Assembly: GCA_977016875.1 (NCBI GenBank)
Contig: CDRNST010000088.1
Location: 2,728,001-2,792,000, forward strand
Length of the DNA stretch: 64,000 nucleotides
Reading direction: 5' to 3'
Source of the DNA: Pavona decussata
Taxonomy: Eukaryota
In this document: piece after piece, positions 61,555-63,350 of the stretch
How the letters are laid out: each line of letters opens with the position of its first letter
Position numbering within the stretch: position 1 is the first letter of the stretch
Program-made: the position numbers and the translations under genes
The notes under the pieces: model-generated
What the model saw: only the letters and a program-made list of their open reading frames with translations
The model's database searches: none
Told to the model about the DNA's origin: nothing

Positions 61555-63350
61555 TAATAAGCAATTATTGGATGAGGTTGAGCATGATAGCGAGAATTAC
61601 CAAGGCCGAGGTTTGTGTTATCTGCCGAAGCCGAAGGCTGAGGCGGATAACACAAACCGAGGCCTTGATAATTTCGCTATCATGTGAAAACCGAATCCAA
61701 TAATTGTTTTATTATACAATTATAAATGTACAAGCGTTGAGACATTTCACAGAACAACAACAAAGTAAGCCACGGAAAGACACGTTTCAGTGTAAACATC
61801 TTTATTAATGACAGCCGTGAATAACGTGTAAAGCGGAATTCAAAAGGTTTACAGAAAGGATTTAAGCTTAAAACATCTGAAAACGTTTCAGGAAAAACTG
61901 AATCGAACTGAAACTTTTTAACAAAATTCTAAAGTTAAGTTGTACGGTCTTATGAAAAATGTTCCCGATTTGCGTTTAATGAATGTTGACATTACAGTTG
62001 AAGAAATTAAAATTTTTCGTTATCTCTGAATGAGAGTTCTGTACAATAAATTCCTCTTGAGAAAGGCTAATAACAGGAGATAACTGGTGCGGATTAATAG
62101 CCACTTCCTCACCTCTCACCTCGCACTCTGTCGTCAGGGTTTCCAACATTTTTCTCTTGGTTGAAATGTCAGTCCTGCTATAGCTCCGAATGCTGGATTC
62201 ATTTCTGTGCCCGCTCACCGCCATGATATGCCTTGCTTCGAACCCGGACTTGTCCAGGATTGTAACCGCCGTTGCCCTGATCGAGTGATTGGTGTAACAC
62301 TTTGAAAGTTTGGCTTCTCGAGAGATCCTTTTCATTTTTTCACCGAGCAAACGCTCTCCGACAACCATGTTATCGTACCACACTTGATCAGATATGCCGG
62401 GGTTTTTCTTCGGCCGCTAAACCAAAAATTCGTTTGAGGGATTCAGGTGCTGTATGTACCGTTCAAATGAAGCCACAGGACAGTGTGGTCCTGGTTTCTC
62501 GAACATCACGCCTCCTTCAAATCCTTCATCATTTTCTCGTCGGTTCTTTGTGAGTTCATCTGTTGTTTTGCACACATATTTTGCACCTTTGCCATCCGTG
62601 CTGAATGAAAAATCAGCTTTTTTGAGTTCACGAAGATTTTGCCTTCCTCGGCGACAAAAGTACAACATAACCTCGAAAAAAACTTTGTTTTGAAGCGTTT
62701 CCGGACTGTTTTGGTTAAAAACATCGCTTTCGTACAGCTTTTTAAGATCTTCTTCGCAGATCGGTGGCGTGTGTTCGACTTTGGCGAGCCCTTGTCGTTT
62801 TAGTTCAACGCACTTGGCGCCAAAAACTTTGTTTGCCTCGGCAAATGCTGGATCGTTTATTATATCGAAGCCAAGAGTCGCCTTGAAGTGTCTGCCCAGT
62901 CCAAATCTCAGGCTGTTGAGAGTGCTTTTGGAATAAGAAGTTCCATCGACTTTTCTAGCCTTGGCATAAAATAGTTTGAGAACGTTACTGATGCCATCTT
63001 TGGTTTGCGGTTCGGGAACTTTCTTCTCCTTCAAATACTGCTGTAAAACTCTAAGAGCTGTCTTGGTAGCTCGTTTGGTGTTCTTTGCGTCCTTGTCGTC
63101 AACAAGGCGTCCTAAATCCGCTTCTGAGACTGATGCGAATCTTGGAGCGGACTCCGCCATGACAATCTTGCTCAAACCGCCGGCTAGCTTGTCAGGTGAC
63201 GAAAACCATTGTCTGCAAAAACGGGTCATACCTACATGCATAAACGCCAGTGTCTGTAGATGTGACGCGATGACACAGCACCATCTAGAATTAGCGGGGT
63301 GCTTTTAGCCAATCAAAATTGAGATAGCATCAGCATTGTATAATAATAAG
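61555..63350 (-). mobile_element. Crypton (tyrosine recombinase DNA transposon)
   Basis: 7-bp terminal direct repeat TAATAAG (61555-61561, 63344-63350); 12-bp IR TTATTATACAAT (61709-61720, 63335-63346); 160-bp terminal hairpin; YR gene. Confidence 0.85.
61976..63160 (-). pseudogene. Tyrosine recombinase (DUF3504 / ZMYM-KCTD1-like), 394 aa, single in-frame TAG at 62417-62419
   Basis: ORFs 62417-63241 and 61976-62383 are in the same frame. Catalytic R (CRRG), K (TKN), HxxR (NHSIR), H (SGH) and Y (IRSY) are present. Confidence 0.9.

Follow-up and report, generated by a model that had tools for sequence, protein, structure and literature searches.

A conserved, strand-asymmetric hairpin at the recombination end of a cnidarian Crypton

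To our knowledge, no class of eukaryotic DNA transposons is as poorly understood as the Cryptons, and we know of no Crypton for which an intermediate or a recombination site has been defined experimentally. Here we analyse a 1.8-kb Crypton copy, and in particular the long DNA hairpin at its left end, at positions 61555..63350 (minus strand) of a 64,000-nucleotide stretch of the Pavona decussata assembly GCA_977016875.1 (contig CDRNST010000088.1, positions 2,728,001 to 2,792,000; hereafter the window, to which all coordinates refer). Like CryptonA elements (Goodwin, Butler & Poulter 2003; Kojima & Jurka 2011, PMC3212892), it contains one DUF3504/Phage_integrase open reading frame (ORF) and no reverse transcriptase, bears short direct repeats at its ends and resides in an animal (cnidarian) host; it may also move through a circular intermediate, as is presumed for Cryptons. 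Animal Cryptons were reported to lack terminal repeats, with neither hairpin nor palindrome mentioned (Kojima & Jurka 2011, PMC3212892). The lineage described here has three features that the survey does not report: a subterminal hairpin of 150 nt, an inverted repeat of 12 bp shared between the inner flank of the hairpin and the other end of the element, and a clear target preference. A full-text literature search found no description of such a terminal hairpin in Cryptons.

The hairpin end is attC-like in four respects but is not an attC site. As in the integron attC/IntI system, it is an imperfect palindrome whose structure is conserved above its sequence, with short boxes at the base of the stem; the crossover maps to that base, so placed that part of the stem moves to the other end of the inserted unit; and strand-specific irregularities occur together with a tyrosine recombinase. 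Unlike attC, it belongs to a eukaryotic host and has a much longer stem, its recombinase is of the DUF3504/Crypton type and unrelated to IntI, and its asymmetry comes from tandem G.A pairs rather than from extrahelical bases. Single-strand recombination is moreover known for attC, whereas here it is a proposal. The attP(+) site of CTX phage, recombined by XerCD, likewise comprises a folded strand whose mismatches build a duplex-like site, and only one strand is competent; there, however, host recombinases act on a forked hairpin of two inverted dif-like sites, whereas the Crypton has its own enzyme and a crossover next to one long hairpin.

In the left-end hairpin of minute virus of mice, a bubble of GA opposite GAA decides which arm becomes the active origin. 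The Crypton hairpin is also terminal and also places GA opposite GAA, in the second of its internal loops. Parvoviruses differ in having a linear single-stranded genome and an HUH nickase, whereas the Crypton has no HUH gene and its hairpin occurs in one orientation. The absence of an HUH nickase equally separates this end from the other hairpin ends handled by HUH enzymes, those of IS200/IS605 and Helitrons. At the level of motifs, the C-GA-G/C-GA-G steps and the C-(GAA/GCA)-G loop resemble the CGAG blocks and GNA mini-hairpins described previously (PMC10085684, PMC3201870, PMC13037366); unlike those short model oligonucleotides and promoter repeats, the motifs here stand at fixed distances in the 75-bp stem of a mobile element.

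The terminal hairpin and its conservation

A search of the 602-Mb genome with the 166-nt hairpin stretch returned at least 40 matches at 98-99% identity. In all 30 of the loci fetched first, similarity begins abruptly at 61555 and extends rightward, with the element adjoining the hairpin. When longer stretches were used, 37 full copies were recovered; all 37 share one start base and begin with the hairpin, which bears out the initial annotation in taking the hairpin for the end of a Crypton, and their homology ends on the right at 63347-63350. The element therefore stands to the right of the hairpin, which lies 260 bp downstream of the minus-strand recombinase gene.

The hairpin proper (61562..61706, plus strand, antisense to the recombinase gene) comprises a stem of approximately 75 bp, the outermost pair of which joins 61555 and 61714. 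Its four internal loops all consist of GA runs. Loop 1 (61574..61575) faces GA at 61693-61694 in the context tGAg/cGAa; loop 2 (61580..61581) faces GAA at 61686-61688; loop 3 (61608..61609) faces GA at 61659-61660 as cGAg/cGAg, the published "CGAG block" (PMC10085684); and loop 4 (61627..61628) faces GA at 61640-61641. An apical GAA triloop of the G-N-A type (61633..61635) is closed by C61632-G61636. The fold calculated with DNA parameters thus leaves unpaired exactly the c-GAA-g cap and the four GA runs listed in the initial annotation, which had also called these loops regularly spaced; in fact they are separated by 4, 26, 17 and 4 bp, a spacing that is nonetheless conserved between families. 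Every GA has a pyrimidine on its 5' side and a purine on its 3' side, and besides the loops only G 61561, TT 61707-08 and G 61594 are unpaired. Two further irregularities are private to the window copy: a C/A mismatch at 61600/61668, which is Watson-Crick in 36 of 37 copies, and a G.T pair at 61582/61685 (T at 61685), which is Watson-Crick in 35 of 37; both are also Watson-Crick in all four read sets. The family consensus is accordingly an imperfect palindrome, which keeps the four GA/GA loops, the bulged G 61594, the T.G pair 61623/61645 and the triloop. All copies show the hairpin in a single orientation, with no flip and flop forms.

Folded as single-stranded DNA, the plus strand of 61545-61725 reaches -58 kcal/mol (z -15.1, no shuffle equal), compared with -54.5 kcal/mol (z -13.2) for the minus strand; with RNA parameters the values are -101.7 kcal/mol for the GA (plus) strand and -88.3 kcal/mol for the minus strand. 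The opposite, gene strand carries T.C/C.T mismatches in place of the G.A pairs. Tandem G.A pairs stabilize DNA and T.C mismatches destabilize it, and a generic energy model is therefore expected to understate the difference between the strands. Blocks of C:G, sheared G:A, A:G and G:C pairs in a pyrimidine-GA-purine context form very stable DNA folds (PMC10085684), as do d(GNA) triloops closed by C:G (PMC3201870).

Copies within the family are too alike for a test of selection, and relatives were therefore collected from other assemblies by means of their proteins. These relatives (L numbers) are single copies, whose element ends were deduced from conserved motifs. Similar hairpins, 200-450 bp downstream of the gene and with the GA strand always antisense to it, accompany L076 (80% protein identity), L079 (65%), L080 (61%), L081 (56%), L083 from Dendronephthya gigantea (53%), L082 (51%), L084 (49%) and L087/L088 (48%), and position and orientation are the same in relatives from other cnidarian assemblies across 32-80% protein identity. 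Exceptions are L077, which has half a hairpin only, and L086 (Clytia), which has no hairpin and is probably a host gene with introns.

Covariation was assessed in an alignment of eight families (A1), with 500 shuffles and with the partner strand slid by 1-3 columns as controls. In this alignment 96.1% of cells are paired, and of the 67 pairs 38 have compensatory changes in both partners; no shuffle among the 500 matches any of five pairing measures, and sliding the partner lowers pairing to 27-44%. Removal of L084 leaves 96.4% pairing and 17 pairs with double changes. Shuffle statistics are inflated by shared ancestry, but both the slid controls and the replacement of whole stems speak against ancestry as the sole cause. 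Against this changing background the loops persist: loops 3 and 4 are GA/GA in all eight families, loop 2 is kept in seven of eight, and loop 1 is purine-purine in seven (GA/GA in six of the eight, AA/GA in L081) and Watson-Crick in L084. Six of the eight families have a GAA triloop and two have GCA, which occurs in L087 as well.

The retention of the design is clearest where the stem itself has been replaced. The stems of L084 have no recognisable sequence similarity to those of the window (47% column identity), yet L084 places C-GA-G opposite C-GA-G three times, spaced 26 and 17 bp apart as in the window, followed by a 3-bp stem and a GAA loop. Unrelated stem sequences built to the same plan are found in L084, L087, L108, L139 and L153 (33-49% protein identity), with a spacing of 25 and 17 bp in L153. 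The Y-GA-R context, the 26/17-bp spacing and the G-N-A triloop thus outlast the wholesale replacement of the stem sequence. In six families the hairpin is conserved above the gene in sequence: nucleotide identities are 97, 88, 84, 84, 83 and 76% for the hairpin, against 78, 67, 67, 70, 73 and 66% for the ORF. Of the 14 hairpin families or types that were folded both ways, 12 favour the GA strand, by 1-5 kcal/mol; in one the strands tie, and in one the order is reversed.

A profile search of metagenome contigs broadened the sample by 79 further loci, whose relatives range from 27 to 99% identity. The sequence extends at least 500 nt beyond the gene on its downstream side in 44 loci, and in 27 of these a hairpin of -44 kcal/mol or lower falls within 1 kb. 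On the gene strand the 79 loci show 36 tandem TC/TC-type loops and one GA/GA loop, in L148, where it probably derives from a neighbouring inverted copy. The L084-type hairpin recurs in L108, L139 and L153 (45, 41 and 33% recombinase identity, respectively), L109 and L096 combine different new stems with the same apex, and in L158, L162 and L142 (32-34%) all that is kept is a pyrimidine-pyrimidine loop or two close to the apex. A strict signature of the apex (Y-TC-R, 3-4 bp, T-N-C, 3-4 bp, Y-TC-R, with complementary stems) matches 11 loci on the gene strand and one on the other, where 0.6 would be expected by chance.

The element, its gene and its ends

The 1.8-kb element contains one long ORF, a tyrosine-recombinase gene at 61976..63241 on the minus strand that encodes 421 amino acids when intact. 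In the window it is broken by an in-frame TAG at 62417-62419. This stop is private to the window copy, as the 421-amino-acid ORF is unbroken in approximately 20 of 37 copies and the read sets carry G, not A, at 62419. The protein matches the Pfam families DUF3504 (5.8e-12) and Phage_integrase (5.2e-07), and an alignment of 16 relatives shows R198/R200 (RRGR), H319-x-x-R322, H345 and Y354 to be invariant; its HSIR..GH..Y segment aligns with XerA in a search of solved structures, as a weak match (E 0.96). It is the sole ORF of at least 100 amino acids with a Pfam family match; the ORFs of the element include no HUH nickase and no replication protein. In the short 5' region, pattern matching located AGCCAATCA at 63307..63315 (plus strand), which reads TGATTGGCT on the gene strand and forms an inverted CCAAT box; ATTG(G) stands at the matching place in L076, L078, L080 and L085. 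The TGATTGGCT box may have a promoter role.

A tyrosine recombinase with R-H-R-Y residues, no reverse transcriptase and short direct end repeats that are not a target duplication characterize the element as a Crypton, and the absence of long terminal or split direct repeats at its ends separates it from DIRS and Ngaro. The closest named proteins come from corals, an octocoral, a sea anemone and a hydrozoan, and the runs that contain the element are coral samples; by its sequence, the element is a young Crypton of a cnidarian host. A contig from the coral metagenome X12 represents the empty site, in which the left flank is followed by a single TAATAAG (to 61561) and then by GGTTAAAGG (window 63351 onward), so that the insertion is polymorphic and its limits are exact. 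The intact ORFs and this empty allele of the same site suggest that the family is probably active. The genome also holds several more Crypton families, at 33-41% identity to P0022, many of them with open frames of approximately 400 amino acids.

The TAATAAG repeats and the 12-bp inverted repeat that the initial annotation placed over the base of the hairpin were both recovered. The left TAATAAG (61555..61561, plus strand) comprises the crossover and the direct repeat, as seen from the junction table and logo of the 37 copies: each copy has A on the outside of the boundary and TAATAAG-CAATTATTGG on the inside, and only the first four bases after the boundary differ (CAAT, TATT, CACT, TAAA). TAAT is therefore assigned to the target, on account of its variation among copies, and AAG, which is constant, to the element. 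The right TAATAAG of the window copy (63344..63350, plus strand) is represented elsewhere by TAAT and then target bases that vary. At this junction the element ends in ...ATTGTATAATAAT, after which the variable bases have the consensus AAnnnTTATY, TTAT being present in 29-30 of 37 copies; the overall target preference is A-TAAT-AAnnn-TTAT-Y. A constant left repeat, a variable right repeat and a preferred target are not the pattern of a target duplication, and fit site-specific recombination via a short overlap (TAAT, at most TAATAA) common to the element and its preferred target.

This putative crossover is built into the hairpin. TAAT lies at the base of the stem and adjoins the conserved CAATTATTG, and the inner flank TTTTATTATACAAT (61707..61720, plus strand) pairs its TTATTA with the left TAATAA. 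Within that flank, TTATTATACAAT (61709..61720, plus strand) is the inner partner of the 12-bp inverted repeat found by repeat search, the terminal partner being ATTGTATAATAA at 63335..63346 (plus strand). The TTTTATTAT of the inner flank is invariant in all eight families, L084 included, and a motif at the 5' end, ATTATACA(A/T)TG, is kept in five families; in ref and L080 its A/T position and the inner flank change together. Read on the gene strand, this flank gives ATAATAAAA and, through the AATAAA within it, may double as a poly(A) signal.

Two further insertions bear on the overlap. L055 (G000:C59:924374-926974) and L056 (C408:146678-149278) occupy the same host repeat (ggccttatcac...) in opposite orientations, and the target of L056 reads ATTA, not TAAT. 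Together these suggest that an insertion takes its orientation from that of the 4-bp overlap.

Possible roles of the folded strand

Covariation of the stems, retention of the GA/GA loops and constant orientation together argue for selection on a strand-asymmetric folded structure. In none of them was an outcome found that the initial annotation would have counted as refutation. Selection at the recombination end, both for pairing within the strand and for a design specific to one strand, is thus well supported by these comparisons, and their best explanation is that the hairpin forms a conserved, selected cis-acting part of that end in an active cnidarian Crypton lineage. The initial annotation had gone further, proposing that the element may excise or integrate through a folded single strand or cruciform. 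The structural half of that proposal, a selected strand-asymmetric structure at the recombination end, stands; the use of such a structure by the recombinase would be a further step, for which attC and CTX attP provide the analogy. With confidence a little short of even, we suggest that recombination on the side of the element takes place at the GA strand in its folded form or at an extruded cruciform, as the site itself or as an obligatory part of that site, and attC-like action of the recombinase on a folded single strand is plausible. That Cryptons of this lineage transpose via a folded single strand, with the GA strand alone exchanged and replication completing the process, is a more tentative extension of the analogy that we consider rather unlikely.

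In the mechanism we envisage, the element would be excised as a circle joined at TAAT, with the predicted junction ...ATTGTATAA-TAAT-AAGCAATTATTGG... In that circle the terminal ATTGTATAATAA would come to lie opposite the inner TTATTATACAAT, lengthening the stem by 12 bp with two bulged bases, and the crossover would thereby fall inside a folded, duplex-like site between the conserved boxes ATTGTATAA and CAATTATTGG. Either the enzyme itself or a factor that it requires would recognise this site, on the GA strand once folded or on a cruciform after extrusion. A single-strand exchange finished by replication could then yield 40 or more near-identical copies from a cut-and-paste enzyme.

Several observations weigh against this proposal. 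Pattern searches found no circle or tandem junction in the contigs of X3, X12, X15 and X17 or in approximately 130 loci, although contigs cannot exclude rare forms, and the data examined show no sign of single-stranded DNA of the element. The sequences that flank the crossover are not mutual inverted repeats, unlike the core sites of classical recombinases. RNA parameters favour the GA strand too, so that the design alone does not separate a DNA structure from an RNA one, and G.T pairs on the GA strand outnumber A.C pairs by only 11 to 7, with no clear strand bias. Moreover, the mismatches are erased in some relatives: the left-arm TC is now GA in L078 and L114, and the right-arm TC is now GA in L110, which converts the outer loops to ordinary pairs. 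All three loci retain intact genes, yet they are single copies and possibly dead. The same qualification applies to L085 and several metagenome loci, which have no hairpin within 1 kb.

The arms of L078, L114 and L110 look as if recopied one from the other, and the hairpin of L078 also lacks the apex. L078, a relative at 57% identity, carries several copies of the palindrome CAGTTATCTGC-TAG-CAGATAACTG (GATAAC-type) in its 5' region (2384-2491). The GTTATCTGC/GCAGATAAC motif forms the upper stem of ref-type hairpins, and it is this upper part that the 3' hairpin of L078 does without.

If the folded-strand proposal is correct, single-strand recombination of the integron attC and CTX type would have its first eukaryotic example in this Crypton lineage; structure-specific recombination of single strands would not be confined to bacteria, and a class of elements regarded as "cut-and-paste" would have a replicative mode that explains its multiplication. 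The comparison also fixes the exact ends of a young family that has intact genes, shows its target preference and supplies an empty site, together with a cis element of precise and testable design. Experiments can be guided by natural variants in which stems have been replaced and loops either retained or lost, and a compact 421-amino-acid recombinase with a structured site is a possible tool.

A different role for the same fold would be that of an RNA hairpin, formed either by an antisense transcript that runs from a divergent 5'-end promoter across a circle or tandem junction, or by a small-RNA precursor that regulates the element. Tandem G.A pairs stabilize RNA as well, RNA parameters favour the plus strand, contigs from RNA libraries cover the hairpin, and Rfam returns sub-threshold matches to microRNA precursor models; these matches score 23 bits against gathering scores of 90-160. 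In the X17 metatranscriptome, contig depth is 148-432 over 61575-61734 compared with 26 over the body of the element, which is not so in DNA runs, but contig depth is no measure of expression. This excess could reflect hairpin-only relatives or transcripts. The favoured strand is antisense to the sole gene and has no upstream element promoter in integrated copies, whereas on the gene strand the AATAAA just before the hairpin implies an mRNA that probably ends before or inside the first arm. The C-(GNA)-G triloops and Y-GA-R blocks are, moreover, best known from DNA (PMC10085684, PMC3201870), and overall we consider an RNA role unlikely.

Alternatively, the hairpin could act as a priming signal, which starts complementary-strand synthesis on a single-stranded form of the element and is not itself the recombination site. 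Single-strand origins of rolling-circle plasmids and filamentous phages are likewise long, imperfect and orientation-specific palindromes, and the folding evidence (covariation, constant orientation and DNA-stabilizing motifs) would be the same. We nevertheless regard a priming signal as quite unlikely; it leaves unexplained why the crossover falls exactly at the base of the stem and why an inverted repeat that lengthens this stem lies at the other end, and the element encodes no replication protein.

The arms might instead be inverted arrays of protein-binding sites on double-stranded DNA, to which the TC/TC positions would only give direction, like the accessory sites of phage attachment sites. 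Conserved boxes, CAATWATTG and TTTTATTAT, do stand at the base, ref-type hairpins have a GATAAC/GTTATC motif in the arms, and related GATAAC palindromes recur in the 5' region of L078. However, binding to duplex DNA would not need complementary arms, and the arms stay complementary although their sequence is replaced, as the 38 pairs with double changes and the new stems of L084, L109 and L096 demonstrate. Such an array is thus an improbable account of the hairpin.

Lastly, an independent palindromic miniature inverted-repeat transposable element (MITE) nested in the founder copy, or a decaying chance palindrome, is refuted by the comparison of copies and families and hardly deserves credence: palindromic MITEs are common, and the window itself contains an unrelated 178-nt palindrome, but all 37 full copies have an identical boundary, the recombinase gene accompanies the hairpin in every one of them and in relatives from other assemblies, the position and orientation of the hairpin are kept down to approximately 33% protein identity, tandem GA/GA mismatches stand where decay would leave random single changes, and no solo hairpins occur among the 40 best genome matches.

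Other features of the window

The 178-nt palindrome just mentioned (47237-47414) is near-perfect (-94 kcal/mol, z -18), and its arms carry the tRNA T-arm-like GGTTCGAATCC. It is probably a foldback of a tRNA-derived short interspersed element or a MITE, unrelated to the Crypton design. A short non-coding element at 45765-46115, or at 45765-45975 when drawn more narrowly, has terminal inverted repeats of approximately 37 nt and folds through these only, with no GA/GA loops seen within it. Its ends, TTTTATTATATA...TATATAATAAA, resemble the 12-bp inverted repeat of the Crypton, of which it could be a non-autonomous partner. Elsewhere in the window, tandem repeats of 17 bp, with ACAGTACTTACAATACT and variants of it as units, form an array at 53974-54214, and a 100-nt direct repeat with 93% identity between its copies (54335-54434/58542-58641) may bound another element.

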